From Selaginella moellendorffii (Eukaryota; Plantae; Lycopodiophyta), in assembly GCF_000143415.4 (NCBI RefSeq), contig NW_003314557.1, positions 1 to 13,170 of the forward strand: a stretch of DNA of 13,170 nt. The letters run 5' to 3'. The notes under the pieces were generated by a model. It did not search any database and was not told where the DNA came from. It saw only the letters and a list, made by a program, of their open reading frames with translations. Below are positions 1 through 13,170 of the stretch, piece by piece (the first letter of the stretch is position 1; the number at the start of each line of letters is the position of its first letter). The translations under genes were made by a program, and so were the position numbers.

Positions 1-450
1 AAAAAAGATTGTTCAAGGTGTTGTAGATCTCCCTGACTGATCAATGGAATGATGGTGAGTGTAGTCAGATATGCAAAACCGGGGGAGTTGTCAATAGCTT
101 TTTGAGATCTACGAATGCTTGCTCACAATCTGGAGACCAGATGAAAGATGATATTGATGGCTTCAGTAATGCTGACAATGGTGCGGTGCGATTAGAAAGA
201 TGATCTACAAAACGACCGAGATACTGCAATTTGCCTAGAAAGTGTTACACATCATTCACACACTTCGGAGAAGGGAACTTTAGAACAACCACAAGTTTGT
301 CAAAATCAACTTGCAAACCCTCACGAGAAATACAGTACCCAAGATAAGTCATGTTCTTGAACCCAAACATGCATTTCGACCGCTTCAGTTTTAAACCAAC
401 ATTTTGTAGCCGATCCAACACTTTACAAACATCACAGACATATTCCTCCC
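1..450 (-). pseudogene. Outer element RT C-terminal/thumb region
   Basis: Reads EEYVCDVCKVLDRLQNVGLKLKRSKCMFG..YLGYCIS..KFPSPKCVNDV*, then LGKLQYLGRFVDHLSNRTAPL..WSPDCEQAFVDLKKLLTTPPVL. Joins 1500+ as TWEEY once the 451-1499 insertion and one TSD copy are removed. Confidence 0.85.
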
Positions 451-643
451 TATAAGCAATTAAAGAGAACAACTCAAGAGACGATCTATAGGGGTTCAAA
501 TATAGAGGGAAAGGGCCTATGAACAAGAGTGGAACCCCTTTTCATTGGTTAAGGATCTTGAGATATTTGGGGTTAAGCGTCTTTGGGTTTGAATAATACT
601 GGGCTGGGTGACCTCCCAGGAAGTCCAAATTCAGGAGCTTACA
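451..643 (+). repeat. 5' LTR of the Cassandra-like TRIM
   Basis: Ends GCTTACA directly before TT+PBS. Positions 482-581 are similar (~85% by eye) to the ends of the downstream units. Confidence 0.8.
571..626 (+). promoter_or_regulatory. 5S rRNA-derived segment (Pol III type-1 internal control region: A-box/IE/C-box) in the Cassandra LTR
   Basis: GGTTAAGCGTCTTTGGGTTTGAATAATACTGGGCTGGGTGACCTCCCAGGAAGTCC aligns without gaps to the plant 5S core as I recall it (AGTTAAGCGTGCTTGGGCGAGAGTAGTACTAGGATGGGTGACCTCCTGGGAAGTCC), about 44/56 identical. Not a full 5S gene. Confidence 0.85.
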
Positions 644-645
644 TT

Positions 646-656
646 TGGTATCAGAG
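646..656 (+). other. Primer-binding site (tRNA-iMet) of the TRIM
   Basis: TGGTATCAGAG, 2 nt after the LTR end. Confidence 0.9.
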
Positions 657-751
657 AAGTCTCAGGTCCAACTCTGATGGTTGGCTAGGGGAATCACACC
701 ATATGTTAATCGACATTTGGTAGGTCCAGTTTGCTCCCGACTGGGCTCGAC

Positions 752-1492
752 CCGAGGGGTAGGTGTCAAGAGAGCAGGGCTCTCAAAAGAGCTGTAGCTC
801 TTAACTTTCGTTCACGAGAGCATGAACTTGCAGAAAAGCATGATCCATAGAGTGAAAGAGCCCACATAGCATAGATTCATAGTTCGATCCATAGGGGTTC
901 AAATGTAAAGGGAAAGGGTCTATGAACATAGGGGTTCAAATGTAGAGGGAAAGGGTCTATGAACATAGGGGTTCAAATGTAGAGGGAAAGGGTCTATGAA
1001 CATAGGGGTTCAAATGTAGAGGGAAAGGGTCTATGAACATAGGGGTTCAAATGTAAAGGGAAAGGGTCTATGAACATAAGGGTTCAAATGTAAAGGGAAA
1101 GGGTCTATGAACATAGGGGTTCAAATGTAGAGGGAAAGGGTCTATGAACATAGGGGTTCAAATGTAGAGGGAAAGGGTCTATGAACAAGAGTGCACCTGC
1201 TTTTCCAACTAGTTAAAGTTCTTGGGATATTTGGGGTTAAGTGTCCCCAAACCAAGGGGTAGGTGTCAAGAGAGCAGGGCTCTCAAAAGAGCTGTAGCTC
1301 TTAACTTTCGTTCACGAGAGCGTGAATTTGTAGGAAAGCATGATCCATAGAGTGAAAGAGCCCACATAGCGTAGATCCATAGTTCGATCCATAGGGGTTC
1401 AAATGTAGAGGGAAAGGGTCTATGAACAAGAGTGCACCTGCTTTTCCAATTGGTTAAAGTTCTTGGGATATTTGGGGTTAAGTGTCCCCAAA
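752..1492 (+). repeat. Two tandem LTR-like units (752-1251 and 1252-1492), each with a ~241-bp core starting with a purine-rich tract (RAGGGGTAGG)
   Basis: CC(G/A)AGGGGTAGGTGTCAAGAGAGCAGGG... recurs at 752 and 1252. The first unit is 259 bp longer because it has 7 extra 37-mers. Confidence 0.85.
892..1187 (+). repeat. Minisatellite, 8 x 37 bp (TAGGGGTTCAAATGTAGAGGGAAAGGGTCTATGAACA)
   Basis: Units start at 892, 929, 966, 1003, 1040, 1077, 1114 and 1151. Single copies also occur at 489 and 1392. No spacers. Confidence 0.97.
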
Positions 1493-1499
1493 GCTTACA

Positions 1500-2230
1500 C
1501 TCCCACGTGCTTCCTAGTGGATCAAGACATCATCAATGAAGTTAGCAGTCACCTTTGGCATATCACAAAGAACCTTATCCATCATTTGGTACAAAATTGC
1601 TGGAGCATTGTTTAAACCAAATAGCATCACCAAGAACTTGTATAAACCAAATGGTGTATAAAAAGCAGTCTTAGGAATATCTTATTTGGCCATCGGTACT
1701 TGCCAATACACAGAAGCAAGATTTACTTTGGTGAACCAATGACTCATTATTCAAACGAAATAGCATCACCAAGAACTCGTATAAACTAAATGGTGTACAA
1801 AAAGTAGTCTTAGGAATATCTTCTTCGGCCATCAGTACTTGCCAATACCCAAAAGTAATATTTACTTTGGTGAACTAACGACTTCTCCTCAAACGATCCA
1901 AGAGATTAGTAGTGTGAGGAAGAGGGTACAAATTCGGGATCGTCACTTTGTTTAATAGACGATAATCAATGTAGAAATGAATACTCCTATCAGGCTTCGT
2001 CACAAAATGAGGTTCACATGCCCAAGGACTCCGTGATTTTCGAATAACACCCTTCTCTAACATCTCCTTGACATTTGCACGTAAAATCTTGATCTCCTTG
2101 GGTGATTGATGACAAATAGAAACCTTGATTAGACAAGCATCCCAGGTTGGAATCGAATGACATGTAGCAATCTTGGTCCCAGATGATAGGTCAAATTCAA
2201 AGAGATTAGTATACTCCTGCATGAGCTGGT
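1500..2230 (-). pseudogene. Outer element reverse transcriptase (N-terminal and catalytic part)
   Basis: EMLEKGVIRKSRSPW..FVTKPD..FYIDYRLLNKVT..YPLP; GYWQV..EEDIPKTTFCTPF; NAPA; catalytic FIDD at 1540-1529. Confidence 0.9.
1606..1883. repeat. 139-bp tandem duplication inside the outer RT
   Basis: 1606-1744 versus 1745-1883: 16 mismatches by hand count, mostly transitions. The length is not a multiple of 3. Confidence 0.92.
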
Positions 2231-2419
2231 CAACCGCTACAACATAAATACTATTGAAGGGATCGGAAAACGGAGAGTAGAATAAGACAAAAACATAGGA
2301 AGAAGTAGTGGGGAGACAAAAGTAATGGAAGCAGAGGTAGAAACAAAGGGACAAAAAGGTACGAAAGTGAGAGGAATGAATGAAATATAAGGAAATATAA
2401 GACAAGGGGGAGAAGCCTT

Positions 2420-2700
2420 AAAGTACACTTGGCATGATTTTGCTGTAACCAATCCATACCAAGGATGAGGTTAAAATCTTGACTCGGCACCACCCATAAT
2501 GATTATAACCCAAGTTCGAGATCACTTACACATACAACTAAGTCTGCCTCATCCCGTGCACATGTATGTGTATAGCCGTTACCATAAAGAATGAAAACTG
2601 GCTCTACTGCATGACGCAAGTGTAGATGGCAATATGTAGCAACAGATTGAGCAATAAAAGATAAACTCAAACCTATATCAACTAACAGGAAGAGAATAAT
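2420..2700 (-). pseudogene. Outer element aspartic protease (decayed)
   Basis: LLVDIGLSLSFIA (D-T/S-G motif changed to DIG, 2679-2671) and C-terminal FNLILGMDWL. Confidence 0.8.
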
Positions 2701-2787
2701 AGGAGACCTCTTATTACAAAAACAAGCTTAGAAAATAAACACTGAATGAATTGGTGCCAAGTGAACCCCTTGATAATACTTCTGAAA

Positions 2788-2856
2788 GGAAGGTGGAGGG
2801 GTCATTGATTTACTCACGCAAGATCCTTCCGTTACTTACGTGACTCCTTGTTTCCC
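2788..2856 (-). promoter_or_regulatory. Putative -1 programmed ribosomal frameshift signal (slippery heptamer plus H-type pseudoknot)
   Basis: G GGA AAC in gag phase (2856-2850), 6-nt spacer, stem TCACGTAAG/CTTGCGTGA. Loop GGAAGG can pair with downstream CCTTCC. The -1 frame is the protease frame. Confidence 0.75.
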
Positions 2857-3630
2857 AAATGTATCTTAGTGTCTAGACCTTCCACTGCAACAGCACTAAC
2901 AAGACGTTGTTGACGCCAAGGTCTCCACCCAGGAAATGAAGGTTGCCAATCCGAAAAATGCTGACAATGCCGATAAGTGTGACCAACTTCATCACACACC
3001 CAGCAGGGAATATCACGGCCACAACCACGTCTTCGCCATTGTCCTTAGACTCGAGTTGCAGCAACATAAACCTCCATTAGAACAAGACCATCACCTATAG
3101 GAAGTGGAGCTGAAGGACGTGTAGTGAGAAGTGGAAGAGGCAATGTCTCGTAACATTGTGCCAAGCGAAGAGTATCGTCAAGGGTCGCTAGAGCAAGTCC
3201 TGCACAAGTCTAACAAGATCTTGATGAAGTGCTGGCCACAACATTCCTAGCTTGATTTGCTGCAATATATTTGGCTCCGCACAAAGCAAAAGGCTTCGAA
3301 AACAAATGCCAAATTGCATCACCAACTCGGATGGCCCTTGACGAAGATGATGCAATTGTTGGAAGGCATTATCACAATTGTTGGCATGTCCGAATGCGTG
3401 TTTGAAGATGTTCAGGAGAACACACCAATACCTACGAGTGGCGGCGCTTAAACCATTATACCATTGTAATGCCGTCCCTTGGAGACACATGGGAAACTCA
3501 TGCAAACGGTGAATGATATATGGCAATCACTGTGAAGTGATCGAACCAATGGTACACATCATCCCCAAGATTCCTACGAAAGAACTTCAGCTGAATGCGA
3601 GGATTAGCACCAAGAGCAGGAAGAGCTGTA
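2832..3630 (-). pseudogene. Outer element gag (its 5' part is displaced by the chromovirus insertion)
   Basis: Retrotransposon-gag-like LQGTALQWYNGL..AFQQLHHLRQGPSE; zinc knuckle CWVCDEVGHTYRHC at 3005-2964; stop at 2834-2832. Confidence 0.85.
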
Positions 3631-4809
3631 TGTAAGCCACAAATTTTTCCTTTCCAATTTGCCAGTTTACCTCGTCTACCCATCCAACACTGCCTTGGCT
3701 TTTGCTAAGTTCCCTCGCCAAGGTTCCCGCTTATGGTACCAGCTCCTACTTGGTCCTACTTGGTTTCAACTACTCACTGCATGAGCAACAGAGTGTTAGC
3801 CATCCATCCACGGATTCCCAAATCTCTCCCAATCCCCCTCCCTGGGTTAGATTGGACTTAAGGTTCAGCTACATTCCCCGCAGGCACAAGCAGCCAAACA
3901 CACCAAGCCTCTAGGTTCCTAACATCCCTTGGTACCACAAGACTTGATCATGGGACCCTCTAAATCCCAAGTCTTGAGTGCAACACTTGCTTCGGGACGC
4001 CGGGGCGAAACACGGCCCGGTATGGGTACCTCTACCCCCCCACTTCCATCCCGAAGGAAGGCCCAAGCCCCTAGGAAGGGCGAGGACCAATGAGCCGCAT
4101 GGTACTCAAGTGAGGCACCACTCCACATGAGCCGGGAGCACCGCAATCGGTTTCCCTTTCGGGAGTGGGAGCTGCTCTTGAGCACTTCCTTGGATGGCCC
4201 CTCCGGCACCAACCAAGTCCATACTCACTCCCACCCAAGGCCCCTCGGTCCCAGTTTCAACCTCAAGTCGGTTTGGAAGCCCCACTGGAGAGTCCCTTCA
4301 AAACTGGTTCCTGGACCTCACTATCCCTACTATACTTTTGGAACCCCCTGCAGCCCCCCCCCCCCCCCTCCCCTCCCCCTGGGAGATGCATGCTTTGGGC
4401 TTTCACCCCTTGACCTGTATTAGTATTCGGACTCGGTCTCGGGCTCGATCTCGGACCCGACTTCGGATTCAGTCTCGGACTCGATCTCAGACCCGATCTT
4501 GAACTCGACTTCGGACCCGATTCTCAAATCTCGGACCCGATCTCAAACTCGACTTCGGACCCAATTCTCGAATCTCAGACCCGATCTCGGACTCGACTTC
4601 GGACCTGATTCTCGAATCTCGGACTCCGTCTCAAACTCGGTCTCTGAGTCAGCCTCGGACTCGATTCTAGACTCTATCTCGAACTCGGTCTCAGAGTCGG
4701 TCTTGGACTCGATCTCAGACTCGGTCCCATCCGATGAACTCTTTGTCATTTTGGTCATGCTTTCAGGGATCCTTTAGCCTATGACACCTCGGGGAGTTGG
4801 TTCCTTACA
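3631..4809 (-). repeat. 3' LTR of the chromovirus (1179 bp)
   Basis: Terminal inverted repeat TGTAAG...CTTACA. Matches 12699-13170 with ~32 substitutions in the first ~380 bp. Confidence 0.92.
4425..4725. repeat. Degenerate 6/12-bp CpG-rich tandem repeat in the LTR, with a 3 x 44-bp higher-order repeat (4495-4626)
   Basis: TCTCGG/ACTCGA/ACCCGA units; 44-mers start at 4495, 4539 and 4583. Confidence 0.85.
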
Positions 4810-4821
4810 ACTCCACCACCC
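4810..4821 (-). other. Polypurine tract
   Basis: GGGTGGTGGAGT on the - strand, immediately before the 3' LTR. Confidence 0.7.
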
Positions 4822-5191
4822 ATAGAAGAAGTTCAATGCCCACATCAAACATCTCTTTTTATCCTACGACTTGTTGACCATGTCTCCGGGGGCATCTCCC
4901 CACTTAGCGGTATGCCTAAGTTAGCCTCCCTGGCCAAGAGCCCATGACAACGGAATATAGGTGTCCCTATACTCCTCACCCCACCACGCCCTAGTATGGG
5001 GTTGGGACTTGAACCCACCCTTGCTTTACTAGGGGGTTGGGACTCAAACCCAACCTCCGTAGAATACATCTACGGATTTGACATCCCTGTGGGGAGTTGG
5101 GCGTAGTTCTCTACGCCTGGTCGACCTAGCTAACCCATGCGCGCCTTCAGGTCCTAACATATGCCATTGCTCAACTTCACAAATTGATATT

Positions 5192-5410
5192 TTAATTGAA
5201 CTTTGCATAAGTACATAGAGTTCTGCCTTGCAGAAATTCCTCCACTAGATCTCACACATTCACTAGGTTCTCCTTTGGTTCCCATGTTGCTTTGCAGTGC
5301 GGAAATCCTTTCCACTTCACATGGAACTCTCTCACCTCGCATCCTTGTCCCTTGCTCTTGTGCGCATTAAGGATGGCCTCGACTTCGTATTCCTCTTCCC
5401 TTTGGATAAC
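5192..5410 (-). pseudogene. Integrase C-terminal chromodomain (group I type)
   Basis: EEEYEVEAILNAH..EFHVKWKGFPHCKATWEPKENL with aromatic-cage residues. The TGA at 5252 is probably a CGA decay; the frame continues DLVEEFL to TAA at 5194-5192. Confidence 0.88.
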
Positions 5411-5573
5411 CTCAGGTAAAGGCTTTACTTGGTCCTTGCGAAGCGGATCCTCAAAGTACGGCTTGAGTAAGTTCACGTGGAACACTGGGTGCATCTTCCC
5501 CATCTCTCGAGGAAGTCGGAGACAATAAGCCACTTTACTGATTCATGCCTCAATCTCATAAGGCCCCGCGAAC

Positions 5574-5624
5574 CTGCTCAAGGAACTCAAGATCAATTCA
5601 TTTACGGAATATATGCATCTTTAC
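5574..5624 (-). other. Putative 51-nt spliceosomal (GT-AG) intron in the integrase GPY/F region
   Basis: CAAAG|GTAAAG...CCTTGAGCAG|GTTCGCG. Removal gives CAA AGG TTC GCG GGG CCT TAT (QRFAGPY); retention gives an immediate TAA. Confidence 0.8.
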
Positions 5625-6042
5625 CTTTGGGTCAACTTCCGGTTGATCCCACTTAGTAGCCTGAGGTTCTTGGTGTTCAGCCACACCTTCTACCCAGCTT
5701 GGAACTCTACATCCTGACGCTTTTGGTTCACATACTTGGTTTGCCTTTGTTGAGCTCATTCCAAGGAATCCCTCACTATATTCCAAATGTTGAGTCTTTC
5801 CGCTGTGAATGCCTCCACTGCGGGTAACTCTCCATGATACTCGGCCACACCAAGCTCCACAAGACCTTCAATAGCTCGCCCATTGATGACTTCCCATGGA
5901 CTCACCCCGATACTCAAATGTGGTGAGTTGTTATAACACATTTTCGCAAGTCCCAAATGACTTACCCAATCGGTTTGGTCTTCTGAGACATAGCATTGCA
6001 AATAATCCTCAAGCTGCCTATTCACCCTTTCTGTTTGTCCGT

Positions 6043-6089
6043 CTGTCAAAAAGTGTTAGTGCCATCAAACTTGACTTAATACCCCATAC
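6043..6089 (-). other. Putative 47-nt spliceosomal (GT-AG) intron in the integrase core
   Basis: ACAG|GTATGG...CTAAC(branch)ACTTTTTGACAG|ACGG. Removal restores HPQTDGQTE and repairs the frameshift. Confidence 0.85.
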
Positions 6090-6620
6090 CTGTCTGTGGG
6101 TGATAGGCTATGCTGAATTTTAACTTGGTGCAATACTGTTCCAGGAGAGTTCTCCAGAACCTACTGGTGAAGATTTTATCTCGATCTGAGATAATCTCTT
6201 CTGGCCTTCCCCGCACTCGAACCACTTGTTCGAAGAACAGCTTCGCCACACCTTCCGCATCCACTTCCATTGTGGTGGGTATGAAATGTGCTATCTTTGA
6301 AAATCCGTCCACCTCCACGAATATCGCATCGAACCCCCTGCTTGGGGGGAGTCCCGTGATGAAGTCCATCGTAAGACATTTCCACGGACGATCTGGAATT
6401 GGGATGCTTTGCAACAAGCCCCCACTAGCCTTAGTCATGGCTTTGACCTGTTGACATATTGGACATGTCTTTACATAGTCTTGGATGTCCTTAGCCATCT
6501 CTGGCTAGTGATACTTCCTCTTGAGTAAGCCCATCGTCTTGGGCACTCCACCGTGTCCCGCAAGAGGTCCGTCATGACACTCCTCCAAGGCTACTTTCCT
6601 TAGTTCCCCTTCTGGGACAT

Positions 6621-7946
6621 ACACCCTCGTTTGCTTGTAATAGATGAGTCCATTGTATTCCACATAGCCCGTTTTCTCTTCCGTTGGCAGCTCACCTCTC
6701 TGATGAGCTTCCCATGCTTCCAGATTCCGCAGCAACACTTCTTGTGCTAGACCATCGTTCTCATATGTTGTCCGCACATCATCCCAAAAGGTTGCTGTTG
6801 CACTGGATATTGCTAACTTCAAGCTCGCTTTTCGATTTAGCGCATCCGCCATGATGTTGCTCTTCCTAGGCTTGTACAAAATCTCACAATCAAACTTGGC
6901 CAAAGCATTGGCCCACCGACCTTGTTTCCCTCTCAGGTCGAGCTGTGACAAGAAGTGTTTCGTTGCCATATTGTCCGTGTAAACCTTGAAATGTCTCCCA
7001 AGGTAGTGTCGCCACTCCTTGAGCACCTTAACCACCGCAAACAATTTCTTCTCGTGGGCAGGCCACTTCCGTTGAGCCTTGTCCAACTTCTTCGAGAAGA
7101 ACGCTACTGGGTGATTGTCTTGCTTCAAAACTGCGCCCAACGCAAAGTCTGAAGCATCTGTTTCTACTTCAAAGTCCTTACCAAAGTCTGGTAATGTCAA
7201 TACGGGAGCCTTCCTCAACTTCCCTTTGAGGTGGACAAATGCCACCTTGTATTCTGCTGTCCATACCATCTTCCCTTTTCCCGTTTGGTCCGTTAAGGGC
7301 AAGGTTACTCTCGAATAGTGTTTAATAAACTTTTGGTAGTAGTTGCATAGCCCCAAGAATGCCCTTAACTCGTGTACATTCTATAGTCACTCCTAATCTT
7401 GGATCGCTTGGACCTTCTCAGGGTCCACTTTGAGCCCGTCCTTGCCCACCACATGCCCGAGAAACTTTACCTTTTGTTGAGCAAAGTCACATTTGCTCTC
7501 TTTAGCATACAGCTGGTGTTCCCTTAGTTTCTCAAACTCCTTTGTCAAGTGTTCGACATGCTCCTCTAGCGTTTTGTTATAGATCAGGATGTCGTCAATA
7601 TAGACGACCACAAAGTGATCCAGATAGGGTACAAAGATGTGGTTCATCAACGCCGAAAATGTTGCCGGCGCATTGCATAGCCCGAAGGGCATCACTAGAA
7701 ACTCAAAGCTCCCATACCTTGTTCGACAGGTTGTCTTCTCGACATCTTCCTCTGCTACCCTAATTTGGTAGTATCCTGACCTTAAGTCAATCCTCGAGAA
7801 GTATTTTGCCTTTCCCAACCTATCGAACAGGTCCTCAATCCTTGGCAAAGGTTATTTGTTCTTCTTTGTATACTTGTTGAGCAACTGGTAGTCTATGCAC
7901 ATGCGCATAGATCCATCTTTCTTTTTCACAAATAATATCAACACCC
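6621..7946 (-). pseudogene. Reverse transcriptase (YIDD) and RNase H of the chromovirus
   Basis: [49 protein letters not shown]; RNase H ETDASDFALGAVL..WRHYL..VYTDN..ADAL. Single frame with in-frame stops, mostly TGG/CGA/CAG decays. Confidence 0.95.
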
Positions 7947-7956
7947 CTTCCTCGTC

Positions 7957-8144
7957 CTCCAGGGTTCCCTGCCAAGCCGGCGTTTGCACCAATCCTCTGG
8001 AGCTTACGGCCGTTCAACAATCTCCAGGGAGCTCTTCCGCCAACCTTGGGAGGATGCTTCAACCTCTCCACCATCGACTTGAGCAGCAACACCATCCCTG
8101 ACGAGATCTTCGACCTGGAGCTGGAAAGCTTGGCTCTCGCCATG
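7957..8144 (+). pseudogene. Captured plant leucine-rich-repeat (LRR-RLK/RLP-type) gene fragment
   Basis: LQGSLP..GVCTN.LELT / [42 protein letters not shown] fits the plant extracellular LRR consensus LxxLxLxxNxLxGxIPxxL, with small deletions and frameshifts. Confidence 0.75.
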
Positions 8145-8309
8145 AAAAAGGCCTCTCTCGTCGTCAAACTCTTCCAGCTCCTGCAAAGTCATCCAGAGCT
8201 TGGATTTGTCGATCGTATTCTTAAATACAGATTGAAATATAATTCTATGTAAGCTTTGTATTTTATTTATCAAACAAATGAAAACTCTCTGGAAACATTG
8301 GGATCCAAC

Positions 8310-9077
8310 TCAGCAAGATTGTATTTCTGGCAGGTCTGCCAGAAATCCCTCAATATCAATAAACACATCATTGAATTCTTGAGGTTGCCCCCAGCAATTG
8401 GTTTGCACATCTCCACCTTGAACCCCACCAACAAACTCCTGACTAACTTGATCAGCAAACACTCCATCGCCAAGCTCGCTAGTTTGAGCAAACACTTCTT
8501 GCACACAATCACCAACAGGCCCTAAGGCTGGTAGAAGCTCCCAACAACTGATTTGATCAAAAGTTTCATGTGAGAAAGGTTGAGCACAATCACCAACACC
8601 ATGACCTTGCTCCCAACAAGTAGTTTGATCAAAACCCTCCTCTCCTGGACCTGATGATTCGCCTATAAATTCTTCTTGGACGACTGGAGTGACCTTGTCA
8701 CACGCACCCCCTCCCTCATGACTCCTTAAAGCTTTGGATTTTCTCTTATTTCCACCCGTGGGCGATAGCGATACGTCCCTTACCTTGCCACCTTGTGTCC
8801 ATTTTCCCTTGCACGACCTACAAATGTAACGCGGCTGGTCGCGCTTGCCAGTACTCTTCTCGTTGTTGTAGTAATCGAACCGCGTGTTGTAAGATTGGCA
8901 CCTTGGGCACTGGTACACGTTGTCCGGAAGGTCGTGGTGCTCCCACACGCCGTACAAGTTTTGATCCCTCACCTCTTGGGCCGTGAGCTTGCAAGCCCTC
9001 TCGCTTCTCAGTCGACGCTTCTTTGTCAGCACCATGATACCATCGTCTTCTCTACTTCTCTTGCTTGCTCTCGCCAT
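8310..9077 (-). CDS. Dof-type (C2C2) zinc-finger transcription factor-like protein, copy A, 255 aa
   Basis: CPRCQSYNTRFDYYNN..QPRYICRSCKGKWTQGGKVRDV matches the Dof consensus CPRCxSxNTKFCYYNN..QPRxFCxxCxxYWTxGGxLRNV. Basic N-terminus (KKRRLR), acidic C-terminus, uninterrupted ORF. Confidence 0.85.
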   Translation of the reverse strand: MARASKRSREDDGIMVLTKKRRLRSERACKLTAQEVRDQNLYGVWEHHDLPDNVYQCPRCQSYNTRFDYYNNEKSTGKRDQPRYICRSCKGKWTQGGKVRDVSLSPTGGNKRKSKALRSHEGGGACDKVTPVVQEEFIGESSGPGEEGFDQTTCWEQGHGVGDCAQPFSHETFDQISCWELLPALGPVGDCVQEVFAQTSELGDGVFADQVSQEFVGGVQGGDVQTNCWGQPQEFNDVFIDIEGFLADLPEIQSC

Positions 9078-9110
9078 AGCTCGTACGATCCTAAAGGACT
9101 TGACCTTATT

Positions 9111-9135
9111 TATTTATATATGCACTAAAGTAAAG
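9111..9135 (-). promoter_or_regulatory. TATA box (TATATAAATA, 9120-9111) with adjacent tandem TAAAG motifs (9126-9135, + strand) upstream of Dof copy A
   Basis: Lies ~35-45 nt upstream of the ATG and is conserved in copy B. Confidence 0.5.
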
Positions 9136-9491
9136 GCTGGGTTCGCTTAAACAGCGTAGATTCCCACTAATCCTGTGCGGTTTAAGGTAATGTCTGGCAA
9201 ATGGTTTGGCTGTAAATACAATCATTGATGATAGAAAACTGCTGAAGCTCAAGATCTATCTATAGGCATTTCCATATGTTTCTGTGAGCTCCTTCGTCGG
9301 CTTACTGGTGGACAGGAAACTATTTTGAGAAAGAGGAGAAAGAAAAAGTATATATTTTTTCTTATCTTTGCAGCTTTTCATATATTTGACATATAGATTG
9401 AAATATAATACTATGTAGGCTTCTATTCATCAAACAAATCTGGAAACCCTGGGATCCAACTATAAATTCTTTTGACAAAAATTTCCATGAA

Positions 9492-10253
9492 TCAGCAAGC
9501 CTGTATTTCTGGCAGGTCTGCCAGAAATCCCTCAATATCAAGAAACACATCGTTGAATTCTTGAGGTTGCCCCCAGCAATTGGTTTGCACATCTCCACCT
9601 TGAACCCCACCAACAAACTCCTGACTAACTTGATCAGCAAACACTCCATCGCCAAGCTCGCTAGCTTGAGCAAACACTTCTTGCACACAGTCACCAACAG
9701 GTCCTTGACCCAAGGCTGGCAGAAGCTCCCAACAACTGTTTTGATCAAAAGCCTCGTGAGATAAAGGTTGGGCACAATCACCCAGACCATGACCTTGCTC
9801 CCAATAAGTAGTTTGATCAAAACCCGCAACACAATCACCCATAACTTGAGATGATTCGCCTACAAATTCTTCCTGGACGACTGGAGTGATCTTGTCTCCC
9901 CCATGGCTCTTTAAAGTTCTCTTATTTCCACCAGTGGGCGATAGCGATACGTCCCTTACCTTGCCACCTTGTGTCCATTTTCCCTTGCACGACCTACAAG
10001 CGTAGCGCGGCTGGTCGCGCTTGCCAGTACTCTTCTCGTTGTTGTAGTAATCGAACCGCGTGTTGTAAGATTGGCACCTTGGGCACTGGTACATGTTGTC
10101 CGGAAGGTCGTGGTGCTCCCACACGCCGTACAAGTTTTGATCCCTCACCTCTTGGGCCGTGAGCTTGCAAGCCCTCTCGCTTCTCAGTCGACGCTTCTTT
10201 GTCAGCACCATGATACCATCGTCTTCTCTACTTCTCTTGCTTGCTCTCGCCAT
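9492..10253 (-). CDS. Dof-type zinc-finger transcription factor-like protein, copy B, 253 aa
   Basis: Paralog of 8310-9077 with the same Dof-like domain. The four indels relative to copy A are all frame-preserving. Confidence 0.85.
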   Translation of the reverse strand: MARASKRSREDDGIMVLTKKRRLRSERACKLTAQEVRDQNLYGVWEHHDLPDNMYQCPRCQSYNTRFDYYNNEKSTGKRDQPRYACRSCKGKWTQGGKVRDVSLSPTGGNKRTLKSHGGDKITPVVQEEFVGESSQVMGDCVAGFDQTTYWEQGHGLGDCAQPLSHEAFDQNSCWELLPALGQGPVGDCVQEVFAQASELGDGVFADQVSQEFVGGVQGGDVQTNCWGQPQEFNDVFLDIEGFLADLPEIQAC

Positions 10254-10282
10254 AGCTCGTATGACCCTAAAGGACTTGATCT

Positions 10283-10307
10283 TATTTATATGTGCACTAA
10301 AGTAAAG
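10283..10307 (-). promoter_or_regulatory. TATA box (TATAAATA) with tandem TAAAG motifs upstream of Dof copy B
   Basis: TATTTATA at 10283-10290 and TAAAGTAAAG at 10298-10307 on the + strand. Confidence 0.5.
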
Positions 10308-10367
10308 GCTGGGTTAGCTTAAACAACGTAGATTCCCACTAATCCTGTGCGGTTTAAGGTAGTCCAG

Positions 10368-10674
10368 AGCGCGATCAAGGCATGCAGCATCCACATCGCA
10401 GAGGGCAAGAAGGAAAGAGTCTGTCGAGAAGCCAGGTATGCATAGCGTACTGGATGACGCGACTGAGAAGAAACGCGTGATCAAGTTGGTGAGAATCCGA
10501 ACGGTTTTGATTCGCATGTGTGCCGAGCCCGTGCCGAGTGTGCACGCTCGCGGAGTGTTCGCCAGGGCACTGGATTTTTCGACTGTGTCATGGAACAATT
10601 TGATGCTTGGATACGGAGCGTATGGGCTTGGTTCTCGAGTCGAGCTGTTTCCATTGATGGAACAATCCGGGGTT
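10368..10674 (+). pseudogene. Captured PPR (PLS-class) gene fragment
   Basis: SAIKACS..(frameshift)..MHS..TVLIRMCA..SVHARGVFARALDFSTVSWNNLMLGYGAYGLG..ELFPLMEQSGV resembles the PLS motifs LKACS / TALIxMYA / ARxVF..VSWNxLIxGY..ALELFxxMxxxGV. Confidence 0.7.
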
Positions 10675-10681
10675 TTCTCAC

Positions 10682-11403
10682 CTTTGTCCACCAACTCCTT
10701 TTGTTGGTGCTTGAACTCCTCGAGTTCTTTTTCGTTCAAACGATAGGGGGGATGAACCACCGCCTCAGCACCCTCGACTTGCTCAATCTTATGTTCTATC
10801 GGTCGTGCAGGGGGCATGGTATCCCTGGCATGGTATCCTGGAATTGGTCCAACACCCGCTAGATAAATAAAGGTACTTCTTCTATTCCTGTCTTTTTGTC
10901 ACTTTTCACCGAGAGTAAACACAAAAATGCAGTCTTGGTTCCTTTAGTGAGTTGTCCTCTCATGGAAACCAGGTTTAGGCATGAATCTTTAGCCTTGCAT
11001 TGCCCTACCTTTAGATCCTGGGCCTCCACCTTGGATTTTCTTCCTTAGGCATTTGCTAGTACCACAAGGTTCTTACCTTGTCTATACAGGGCTACCATGA
11101 ACCGATTGAACCAATCCATTCCGAAGATCACGTCAAATCCCGCCATGTCCAACACGGTGAAATCCATGTCTATTTTCCAAGTCCCTACTTCGACTCTCGC
11201 TTGTCGAAATACCTCATCGGTGCTTTGGCTACCTTGAACAAACTCTATAGTCCTTGGTTTGCCTAGCCGTTGCACCGTTAGTCCGGCTTGCCAGACTATG
11301 TTTGGAGCCACAAAATTATCCAAAGCACCCGTGTTAATAAGGATCTTAACAAAGCTACCTCCGAGCTTCCTTCGGAGGGCTAGTAGATGTCGCGAACGAT
11401 TCT
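10682..11403 (-). pseudogene. Chromovirus protease (DTG changed to NTG), linker and RT N-terminus
   Basis: VKILINTGALDNFV, FDVIFGMDW; MPPARPIEHKIE..PPYRLNEKELEEFK..ELVDKG. A small duplication GGCATGGTATCC (10813 and 10827) shifts the frame. Confidence 0.9.
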
Positions 11404-11457
11404 CTACCAAAGTTGCTCATGTAATGAGTAACTTTGAGCTAGGGACTGGTCACATAC
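11402..11457 (-). other. Candidate 54-56-nt intron at the gag/protease junction
   Basis: GAG|GTATGT...CTTTGGTAG(AG). The TAG is also the gag stop. The exact boundaries that give an in-frame fusion are ambiguous. Confidence 0.5.
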
Positions 11458-12639
11458 CTCAGTTTGGATGTCACTTGACTTAATAGCCATATTGGCTCTA
11501 GCCTTCTTCGGGTAGGGACATTCCCTCGGAAAGTGTCCTGCTTCACTGCAGTTGTAGCATACGTTGTTTCCCACGCTGCTAAATGACTTGACCTTCTTAT
11601 CCGTGGGTTTGTCTTTTTGTGCTTGACTCCCCCACGTACTTGCTCGCTGGCAGAACCCCGAGGACTCATTCTTAAAGAAACTCTTCTTGAATTTCCCTTT
11701 GCTATACGTTCCTCTTGGTTTGGCCCCTTTCCTAAATGTGGACCCTGACCCCGTCGCGTTCCCCTTTTGCAGATTATCGTTGAAATGCACCTTGATGGCC
11801 ACATCCAACGCTTCCTTGTAGTTGGCCAGGTTCCAGCGCATCACCTCACCGCGAGCCCAGGTTTGCAAACCTGATATAAAGGCATGGAACGCATCCATAT
11901 CCCCCATTTTCGTGACAAGTATCCTCTTTGCCATAAACCCATTCACATACTCCTGAATGGTTCCGGTCTTCTTCAGCCTACTCAATTCGTCTCTTAGATG
12001 CAGAGTAGCATTTAGAGGAACGTAAGTTGCGCCGATCCTCGCCTTCATCATGTCCCAAGTGGCCACCGGTCTTTTGTTGGCCTCCGTCGTTCTCCACCAA
12101 GACTTGGCATTATCTGCCAAGTATGGTTTTGCACATAGGACCTTCTTTGAGCTCGGTAATTGCAACGCTCGGAAGTAGTCCTTCATATTGTAAAACCAAT
12201 CCTCCACCACCTTATAATCATTCACTCCCTTCAAGATAGGTGGGGGCTTTGGTTTGTACTTGGGAACTGCCTGAGGGACTGATTCCACTTCGGTCTGTTT
12301 GACCTTGTTTGGTTCTGCCTCAGTCCCTACCGAAGGGTCCGCATCTTTTGCGCTGCCAGCATCCCCAGTCTTTTGCTTTTTCTTCTGCTTCTCATCATGC
12401 TTTAGTTTGCGTACGAGAGTCTCTAGTAGGGCATTGGTCTGTGCCAACTGTCCTTCTAGAACATCCAATCGAGCCTTGGACGACCGAACCTCGCCACCGG
12501 ACTCCTGTTTGGAAGTTTCCTCACTGGAGTCCTCCTCATGCAAGGATTCCTCATCCATAGCATCTCGTTCGATCAGAGGCTCCACCTCTGGAGGAAGTTC
12601 CGTCTCCGCCTTGGTTCGCTTCCGCCCAGCCTTTGCCAT
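11404..12639 (-). CDS. gag: Chromovirus Gag (open frame; first ATG at 12639)
   Basis: VEDWFYNMKDYF..YLADNAKSWW..LSRLKKTGTIQEY..FISGL; zinc knuckle CYNCSEAGHFPREC. Confidence 0.9.
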   Translation of the reverse strand: MAKAGRKRTKAETELPPEVEPLIERDAMDEESLHEEDSSEETSKQESGGEVRSSKARLDVLEGQLAQTNALLETLVRKLKHDEKQKKKQKTGDAGSAKDADPSVGTEAEPNKVKQTEVESVPQAVPKYKPKPPPILKGVNDYKVVEDWFYNMKDYFRALQLPSSKKVLCAKPYLADNAKSWWRTTEANKRPVATWDMMKARIGATYVPLNATLHLRDELSRLKKTGTIQEYVNGFMAKRILVTKMGDMDAFHAFISGLQTWARGEVMRWNLANYKEALDVAIKVHFNDNLQKGNATGSGSTFRKGAKPRGTYSKGKFKKSFFKNESSGFCQRASTWGSQAQKDKPTDKKVKSFSSVGNNVCYNCSEAGHFPRECPYPKKARANMAIKSSDIQTEVCDQSLAQSYSLHEQLW

Positions 12640-12682
12640 CTCTGAGCAATCCACCTTTATCCTTCGCTAGAACTGAGGAAAA

Positions 12683-12695
12683 GGCTCCGATACCA
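12683..12695 (-). other. Primer-binding site (tRNA-iMet) of the chromovirus
   Basis: TGGTATCGGAGCC on the - strand, 3 nt after the LTR end; one mismatch to TGGTATCAGAGC. Confidence 0.9.
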
Positions 12696-12698
12696 AAT

Positions 12699-13170
12699 TG
12701 TAAGCCACAAATTTTTCCTTTCCAATTTACCAGCTTACCTCATCTACCCGTCCAACATTGCCTTGGCTTTTGCTAAGTTCCCTCGCCAAAGTTCCCACCT
12801 ATGGTACCAACTCCTACTTGGTCCTACTTGGTTTCAACTATTCACTGCACGAGCAATAGAGTGTTAGCCATCCATCCACAGATTCCCAAATCTCTCCCAA
12901 TCCCCTTCCCCGAGTTAGATTAAACTTAAGGTTGGGTTACACTCCCTGCAGGCATAAGCAGCCAAGCACACCAAGCCTTTAGGTTCCTAACATCCCTTGG
13001 TACCACAAGACTTGATCATGAGACCCTCTAAATCCCAAGTCTTGGGTGCAACATTTGCTTCGGGACACTAGGGCGAAACACCATGGCCTAATGGCCCGGT
13101 ATGGGTACCTTTACCCCCCCCCCCCCTCCACTTCCATCCCGAAGGGAAGGTCCAAGCCCCTAGGAAAGGC
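12699..13170 (-). repeat. 5' LTR of the chromovirus (partial)
   Basis: Direct repeat of 3631 to ~4080. Confidence 0.95.

Follow-up and report, generated by a model that had tools for sequence, protein, structure and literature searches.

A decayed Ty3/gypsy element of the lycophyte Selaginella moellendorffii carries, inside its reverse transcriptase (RT) gene, an insert of about 2.73 kb of host DNA in which two complete Dof genes are flanked by remnants of two unrelated plant genes. This arrangement probably arose after the element had integrated, when a break in RT was repaired with filler DNA derived from a Dof array. Repair-type insertion is favoured because the Dof genes keep their promoters, because their ORFs have decayed little, because the two copies are diverged paralogues, and because 27 nt of the target were lost without a target-site duplication (TSD). 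The window analysed here is the whole 13,170-nt stretch of contig NW_003314557.1 (assembly GCF_000143415.4, positions 1 to 13,170), and its features are collected in Table 1.

Table 1. Parts of the chromovirus and of the insert in its RT gene, in the order of the element (minus strand of the window).
Feature	Position	Strand	Remarks
5' LTR, 3' part only	12699..13170	-	aligns with 3631-4081; extends past the window; ends ...GTGGCTTACA at 12699
PBS TGGTATCGGAGC	12684..12695	-	3 nt beyond LTR end
gag ORF, intact, 416 aa	11404..12654	-	Retrotrans_gag and CCHC zinc knuckle
Aspartic protease (RVP_2)	11045..11410	-	followed by stop at 11047 and frameshift near 10861
RT, N-terminal part	10680..10871	-	ends ...QQKELVDKG; from reading frame
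PLS-type PPR gene fragment, degenerate	10363..10679	+	antisense to element; at least one frameshift, near 10420
Dof unit A	9391..10362	-	~110 nt 5' flank, TATA box 10291-10282, ORF 10253-9492 (253 aa), 3' flank
Spacer between Dof units, unique	9190..9390	.	AT-rich (35% GC); coding similarity not seen
Dof unit B	8225..9189	-	5' flank, TATA box 9119-9110, ORF 9077-8310 (255 aa), AATAAA 8267-8262
LRR receptor-kinase-type fragment, degenerate	7948..8224	+	antisense to element; about 2 repeats, small in-frame deletions
RT resumption (RVT_1)	7393..7947	-	in-frame TAA at 7854
RNase H, integrase (H2C2 and rve), chromodomain	5252..7356	-	Pfam
3' LTR	3631..5100	-	3631 end firm; ~5100 start estimated

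The host element

The host of the insert is an old, dead chromovirus copy. Its Pfam matches follow the minus-strand order Retrotrans_gag and zf-CCHC, RVP_2, RVT_1, RT_RNaseH, Integrase_H2C2 and rve, and Chromo (E 1.8e-12), which is the gag-PR-RT-RH-INT order with a C-terminal chromodomain expected of this group. The element is bounded by direct LTRs, and a primer-binding site adjoins the 5' LTR; we take this site to be of the tRNA-iMet type, from general knowledge of plant LTR retrotransposons. Both LTRs end in ...GGCTTACA, and tandem repeats of 12 nt and 44 nt occur within the 3' LTR, at 4415-4726. The start of the 3' LTR is only an estimate, because the corresponding portion of the 5' LTR lies outside the window.

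Decay is evident in both the LTRs and pol. The comparable LTR segments align at 92%, with a K2P distance of 0.084 (8.4%) made up of 34 transitions and a single transversion. There are 10 in-frame stops and at least two frameshifts in pol, including three stops at the boundary of RT and RNase H (7395, 7389 and 7383) and, from RNase H to the chromodomain, five stops (6507, 5758, 5692, 5623 and 5545) with a frameshift near 6060. Among pol codons that are one transition away from a stop, 11% have been hit. The gag ORF is free of stops, with none of 31 susceptible codons hit (P = 0.024), and decay has therefore been uneven along the element.

The break in the RT gene

The RT frame is interrupted at 10680/7947; the glycine codon that ends its first part occupies 10682-10680, and the exact junction bases are not fixed. 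Between KG and the FV(T/K)K motif there are 5 residues here, as compared to 14 in the second gypsy element of the window, corresponding to a net loss of 9 codons (27 nt). Frame reading and this alignment bear out an earlier sequence-only reading, according to which RT breaks off after ELVDKG and resumes at about 7946 with some 9 codons missing. The same reading had stated that no TSD, TIR or LTR was present. This is true of the insert: no inverted repeats were found in the window and no TIRs at the insert, and no TSD was seen by eye at either junction. It is not true of the host element, given the LTRs at 3631 to about 5100 and from 12699 to beyond 13170. The lack of a TSD or terminal repeats, in combination with a small target deletion, is the arrangement expected of filler DNA introduced by double-strand-break repair (synthesis-dependent strand annealing or non-homologous end joining).

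The interruption was also considered as an intron, with AAAG/GTGAGA at 10682 and GAAG/GG at 7948 permitting an in-frame join. This possibility was rejected, as a pyrimidine tract is absent from the 3' side and splicing would still leave the 9 conserved RT codons missing.

It is highly improbable that the arrangement is an assembly artefact in which reads from a Dof array were fused with retrotransposon reads. Such an error might be encouraged by the fact that the element and the Dof units are both repeated in the genome, and by the reference assembly of S. moellendorffii, which mixes two haplotypes. However, the two junctions interrupt RT at one and the same place, separated by 27 nt in the coordinates of the element, and both lie in unique PPR and LRR scraps rather than in repeats, in a window that contains no N. 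A chimeric join would not happen in this way twice.

Contents of the insert

The two Dof ORFs of the insert are intact and match PF02701, with E values of 1.6e-24 and 1.3e-25; the bit scores obtained, 89.8 and 86.2, both exceed the gathering cut-off of 26.6. The remaining identifiable pieces came from a PDB sequence search, in which 10363-10680 (+) matched a synthetic PLS-type PPR-DYW protein (E 1.5e-12) and 7947-8252 (+) matched plant LRR receptor kinases, namely GSO1 (E 1.2e-22), BRI1-like and PEPR1; a Pfam search gave no match for either fragment. The PPR fragment spans the distance from the RT junction to Dof unit A. Two intact Dof-like genes, and fragments from three or more unrelated plant gene families with Dof in the sense of the element and LRR and PPR antisense, had been read from the letters of the DNA beforehand, and the Pfam and PDB searches substantiate both statements. 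The sense orientation of the Dof genes is what RNA-mediated capture predicts and counts against a repair-type insertion, although the chance of this orientation is 50%.

Each complete Dof unit is about 0.97 kb long with sharp homology borders, and the two units lie 1.18 kb apart. Common to both are a 5' flank of about 110 nt and a 3' flank; the 5' flank holds a TATA box that precedes the ATG by about 45 nt, and about 60 nt of DNA upstream of the TATA box are retained in both. The units are therefore copies of a gene with its promoter, and not of an mRNA, and the two genes may be expressed from their own predicted promoters. The products annotated for this Dof family match the uninterrupted ORFs of the window end to end, suggesting that the family gene is intronless; the absence of introns from the insert is therefore uninformative as to an RNA origin.

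The four cysteine ligands of the zinc finger (C57, C60, C86 and C89) are invariant, and the zinc ligands and Dof core are retained in both copies. The spacing is not the canonical C-x2-C-x21-C-x2-C but x25, the cysteine pairs being set further apart by a 4-residue insert (EKSTGKRD), and the genes represent a divergent subfamily.

A mosaic of unrelated gene pieces without a TSD is also reminiscent of capture by Helitrons or Pack-type elements, and a DNA transposon that collects gene fragments could have carried a Dof gene and scraps into RT, with its ends later lost or blurred. In keeping with this scenario, one whole gene type is mixed with shredded host fragments, the sharply bordered units have three different flanks, and Helitrons likewise leave no TSD. 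However, inspection by eye of both strands at 10680, at 7947 and at the borders of the Dof units revealed no Helitron ends (5' TC; 3' CTRR with hairpin), and the junctions have no TIR termini. In addition, a clean insertion would not remove 27 nt of target, and the PPR and LRR homology reaches the RT junctions. Capture by a DNA transposon is thus distinctly unlikely.

The Dof family and the relation of the two copies

The Dof genes of the insert belong to a family specific to S. moellendorffii, with the arrangement C-x2-C-x25-C-x2-C, that comprises no fewer than 16 gene models, which are spread over at least 7 scaffolds and frequently lie next to each other in pairs. Both copies share with the family the x25 finger spacing and the FDY and KGKW substitutions. 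They differ from the arrays of the family in that the units sit inside the RT gene of a retrotransposon and in that copy B is divergent.

The single departure of copy A from the consensus of 14 paralogues is V54M, due to a G>A substitution in a CpG. Copy A is identical at 251 of 253 residues to SELMODRAFT_419294 and 419297, which are on another scaffold, and 98-99% identical to annotated members of the family. In the case of copy B, which is of a divergent type without an annotated twin, a long private branch with indels looks like relaxed constraint. The two copies have no derived residue in common, and A is nearer to paralogues elsewhere than to B; A and B are diverged paralogues. Duplication of one Dof unit in tandem, in place, was considered and rejected on the same grounds, and also because the flanks of the units are unrelated.

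The differences between A and B consist of 33 transitions and 21 transversions, as opposed to 34:1 for the LTR pair (Fisher P = 9e-5), and most of the A/B divergence therefore did not arise in this silenced context. The divergence is also a mosaic, amounting to 1.5%, 12% and 2.7% in three segments, which is suggestive of gene conversion.

Relative age of the insert and the element

For a copy A dating from the integration, neutral evolution predicts about 25 replacement changes (probability of one or fewer, 3e-10). About 8 would be expected at an omega of 0.31, the value for A versus B (P = 0.004), and at an omega of 0.1 the test does not reject. For the Dof ORFs, none of 54 stop-susceptible codons has been hit, compared with the 11% of pol (P = 0.0015). 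The Dof genes thus look younger than the decay of pol and the LTRs, or exempt from it, although strong selection or gene conversion could mimic this appearance. The CpG observed/expected ratio is about 0.6-0.7 in insert and element alike, and is therefore of no use as an age marker.

The argument from age fails if purifying selection has been strong, or if gene conversion has refreshed the Dof genes, whether paralogues were the source or the exchange took place between A and B themselves. Two further observations count against the favoured view, namely that the overall A/B dS of 0.124 does not fall below the divergence of the LTRs, and that gag is also free of stops.

These considerations lead to an alternative in which the Dof pair arrived near the time of integration, by either route, and was kept intact by host use, while conversion with the arrays held copy A near the consensus. 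Such an old insertion under selection would account for the A/B omega, for the retention of all four zinc ligands and the Dof core in both copies, for the mosaic identity, and for the failure of the age test to reject at an omega of 0.1. On the other hand, any one copy should be under weak selection where at least 14 near-identical paralogues exist, and the long branch of copy B does not have the look of maintained constraint. We regard this alternative as doubtful.

The mechanism of insertion

Whereas the anatomy, the identities of the pieces, the decay of the element and the intact, near-consensus condition of the Dof genes are observed, the following order of events, repair mechanism and source of the mosaic are what we infer. 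The chromovirus would have integrated first, with a break later occurring in its RT region; repair of the break would have cost 27 nt of RT, and the gap would have been filled with DNA copied from a region of the species-specific Dof arrays. Repair would probably have proceeded by synthesis-dependent strand annealing, or by end joining that took up filler DNA, comparable to the movement of genes in grasses. The copied segment would have brought with it two already diverged, complete Dof genes, each with promoter and 3' end, and also degraded remnants of two other genes, one PPR and one LRR-kinase. The PPR/Dof/LRR mosaic may already have been assembled at the donor locus rather than during insertion.

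Gene movement through double-strand-break repair, by way of filler DNA or strand annealing, has been described in plants (Wicker, Buchmann and Keller 2010, Genome Res 20:1229, cited in PMC3445842). As far as the cases are summarised there, the insert is similar in being a kb-sized foreign segment of genes and gene fragments inside a transposable element, with promoters kept and no TSD or terminal repeats. It differs from the cases so summarised in that the genome is that of a compact lycophyte and not of a grass, and in that the cargo is two whole, paralogous transcription-factor genes.

Genes within full-length LTR elements are common, with 672 reported in rice and 1,343 in sorghum (PMC3726574), and a second route is capture by the element itself. 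In the case of Bs1 of maize, host sequence was captured via RNA, as fragments without full-length ORFs (PMC13317346). By analogy, nascent cDNA could during reverse transcription have changed template from the element RNA to a read-through Dof-array transcript packaged alongside it, and then back again, after which a non-autonomous, gag-keeping, cargo-bearing element integrated. Several features agree with such a transduction: the cargo lies between a pair of LTRs with an intact primer-binding site, and the Dof genes are in the sense of the element; a return switch 27 nt further along would account for the small loss of RT; gag is intact and pol broken, as in gag-only non-autonomous elements; and the Dof family is dispersed over at least 7 scaffolds, often in adjacent pairs. 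As in Bs1 and other gene-capturing LTR retrotransposons, moreover, host sequence from several gene families is found between the LTRs.

Other features, however, set the insert apart from Bs1. Cargo of the Bs1 type, being RNA-derived, would be expected to begin no earlier than the transcription start and to lack a promoter, whereas both Dof units keep a TATA box. The promoter DNA and antisense scraps would demand an unusual read-through transcript, and the poly(A) signals on the sense strand of the cargo (AATAAA at 8267-8262) would tend to shorten the genomic RNA. The two genes are complete and appear far younger than the LTRs and pol, or less affected by decay, as if the cargo were younger than the integration, and evidence of mobilisation is lacking. 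No second copy of either junction was found in a search that was made at the protein level and is a weak test; here, a word search with the RT/PPR junction ORF (10817-10314) and the LRR piece gave no match, which is uninformative owing to the length filter of the search and as such ORFs are rarely annotated. Transduction is accordingly considered unlikely.

Of the two mechanisms offered by the sequence-only reading, a repair-type insertion of a mosaic segment fits best, given the promoters, the signs of age, the paralogues and the 27-nt loss, while transduction by template switching, and with it an element that spreads a transcription factor, is without positive support. An extended version, whereby a gag-retaining non-autonomous chromovirus picked up two Dof genes with their promoters by transduction and, mobilised in trans, helped to scatter the Dof family over at least 7 scaffolds, often in pairs, is very unlikely.

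Implications

Nothing relevant was found in the literature on Selaginella, Dof and retrotransposons combined. Insertion of genes into a transposon by repair is already known and not especially remarkable, and here it most likely took place after the element had landed. Copying of this kind degrades gene order and gives rise to additional gene copies, and most studies of it have concerned grasses; the RT insert provides a clean, datable case from a lycophyte in which whole genes were copied with their promoters into a transposon. Should the junctions turn out to be multi-copy, the element would instead be an unusual case of a retrotransposon with complete transcription-factor genes as its cargo, and if the transduction reading were true, a retroelement would have served as the vehicle for whole transcription-factor genes. 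For the young and expanding Dof family of Selaginella, the insert adds one dispersed locus, including a divergent copy without an annotated twin.

The interrupted chromovirus

The minus strand of the window carries a Ty3/gypsy chromovirus, a retrotransposon whose primer-binding site we take to be of the tRNA-iMet type. Its LTRs differ by a K2P distance of 0.084 over 451 aligned nt (3631-4081 versus 12699-13170), with 34 transitions, one transversion and 11 differences in CpG context, a spectrum that reads as a strong cytosine-deamination signature, as silenced DNA yields. The pol region (5252-11410) is dead, since 10 stops lie in its reading frame, which is also shifted at two or more points. 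Several of the stops are W-to-stop changes, three of them in a stretch of five codons, IQD*E*L*, at 7395-7383. The gag ORF has no stops, which at the pol hit rate has a probability of ~0.024, so decay is uneven along the element. Such a gag, open while pol is broken, could be due to chance, or to a lineage living as a gag-only non-autonomous element. Tandem repeats of 12 nt (TCGGACTCGATC-like) and of 44 nt form a block within the 3' LTR at 4415-4726, which gives rise to long ORFs rich in Ser, Asp and Arg on each strand.

A second gypsy-type element, different and more decayed (1-3600, minus strand), abuts the 3' LTR of the chromovirus, the region as a whole being a transposon nest. Within or beside this second element sits a 37-nt minisatellite of at least nine copies with up to 99% identity (816-1259 and 1385-1492); copies related to it occupy 482-543 and 1385-1446.

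Features of the chromovirus, its insert and the second gypsy-type element, in window positions
Feature	Position	Strand or sense	Details
5' LTR	12699 to beyond window edge at 13170	-	3' end reads ...GGCTTACA at 12699
Primer-binding site	12695-12684	-	TGGTATCGGAGC
gag	11404-12654	-	intact, 416 aa; Retrotrans_gag and CCHC knuckle
pol domains, in order		-	protease (RVP_2), RT (RVT_1), RNase H, integrase (H2C2 and rve), chromodomain
PPR fragment	10679-10363	antisense to element	PLS-type; E 1.5e-12 versus synthetic PPR-DYW protein; at least one frameshift
Dof unit A	10362-9391	element's sense	ORF 10253-9492
Spacer	between Dof units A and B		unique, AT-rich, 201 nt
Dof unit B	9189-8225	element's sense	ORF 9077-8310 (-)
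LRR receptor-kinase fragment	8224-7948	antisense to element	E 1.2e-22 versus GSO1; repeats with small deletions
3' LTR	end at 3631	-
Second element, Retrotrans_gag piece	3188-3526	-
Second element, RT N-terminal part	1875-2405	-
Second element, tandem duplication	1606-1883	-	139 nt
Second element, RT piece	245-526	-

The insert in RT

The RT frame stops after ...QQKELVDKG at 10680 and picks up again at 7947, with a net loss of nine codons when the second gypsy element serves as reference, and ~2.73 kb lies between the breakpoints. This insertion of a Dof pair and gene scraps is a real feature. The sequence-only reading had described an interrupted RT lacking about nine codons, an insert without TSD or TIR, two intact Dof-like genes in the element's sense, and PPR and LRR pieces antisense to it, and this description is borne out by the frame ends, the codon count and the protein matches. 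Misassembly is a very improbable source of the arrangement, as the window contains no N. No TSD was found at the insert, nor any TIR or Helitron-type end, and the lack of the latter two speaks against carriage by an unrecognised DNA transposon, itself quite improbable. Protein word searches with the junction-spanning ORF and the LRR piece, a weak test, gave no match.

The junctions at 10682-10680 (AAAG/GTGAGA) and 7948-7945 (GAAG/GG) are splice-like and would join in frame. An intron was nevertheless rejected, and the likeness judged a coincidence, because there is no pyrimidine tract and nine conserved RT codons are absent even if the ends are joined.

The two Dof copies

Each Dof unit, of ~0.97 kb, consists of a 5' flank of ~110 nt with a TATA box ~45 nt ahead of the ATG, an uninterrupted ORF (253 aa in copy A, 255 aa in copy B) and a 3' flank. 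Both ORFs match Pfam Dof (E ~1e-25), with a zinc-finger spacing of C-x2-C-x25-C-x2-C (canonical, x21), and the proteins are 87-99% identical to Selaginella moellendorffii gene models. One 90%-identity Dof cluster comprises 16 models on at least seven scaffolds, many with adjacent accession numbers and hence neighbouring genes.

Copy A is the consensus of 14 paralogues save for V54M (G>A at a CpG), and matches SELMODRAFT_419294 and 419297, on another scaffold, at 251 of 253 residues. Copy B has ~18 derived residues plus indels, including inserts KSKAL and GGGAC, replacement of DCVA by PGEE, and A85I within the finger; no annotated twin was found in the protein collection, where its best match is 87% identical, and by these residues it is a divergent type. 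In-place duplication of one unit is ruled out, as the copies have no derived residue in common and their flanks are unrelated on either side. Between them dS is 0.124 and dN 0.038 (omega 0.31), with a mosaic divergence (1.5% over codons 1-115, 12% in the middle, 2.7% at the C-terminus) that suggests gene conversion. Their 33 transitions and 21 transversions differ from the LTR spectrum (Fisher P = 9e-5), so these changes mostly arose outside this silenced setting.

Order of events and route of insertion

Three arguments favour, without proving, Dof DNA younger than the element's integration. At the LTR-based rate, copy A would be expected to carry ~32 ORF changes, ~25 of them amino-acid-changing if neutral, and only one replacement is seen; the probability of so few, had copy A been here since integration, is 3e-10 under neutrality and 0.004 at omega 0.31. 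Among codons one transition from a stop, 11% have become stops in pol and 0 of 54 in the Dof ORFs (P = 0.0015). The lowest A/B segment divergence, 1.5%, is far under the 8.4% expected of a neutral pair over the LTR age. However, strong purifying selection or gene conversion can escape each argument, and gag is also stop-free, which is why this order is only favoured. An old cargo held intact by selection and conversion, consistent with the mosaic divergence and with an age test that is not significant at omega 0.1, is unlikely.

On balance, the most likely account, held with moderate confidence, is that the Dof pair and gene scraps entered the RT of the dead chromovirus by DNA repair after integration. 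The chromovirus would have integrated first and the Dof DNA arrived later, when a break in RT was repaired with filler DNA via synthesis-dependent strand annealing or end joining, which fits the small target deletion and the missing TSD. The Dof segment would have been copied at the DNA level rather than captured from mRNA, because the units bear promoters and the scraps lie antisense. A repair process of the same kind is the route proposed for gene movement into transposons of grasses, in a passage of PMC3445842 that cites Wicker et al. 2010.

The sequence-only reading had offered transduction beside repair-type insertion; the promoter-bearing units, target deletion and apparently younger cargo favour the latter. 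Transduction, by template switching during reverse transcription of a packaged read-through transcript of a Dof array, is compatible with the sense orientation of the Dof genes and the intact gag, and template switching underlies Bs1 and similar captures (PMC13317346). It also predicts several copies of the chimera, and a cargo as old as the LTRs, which looks wrong; with the promoters and antisense scraps speaking against mRNA capture, it is improbable here. In other plants it is common to find genes within full-length LTR elements (PMC3726574), and the Selaginella insertion would be a case of a process already known, of modest weight unless its junctions prove to be multi-copy.
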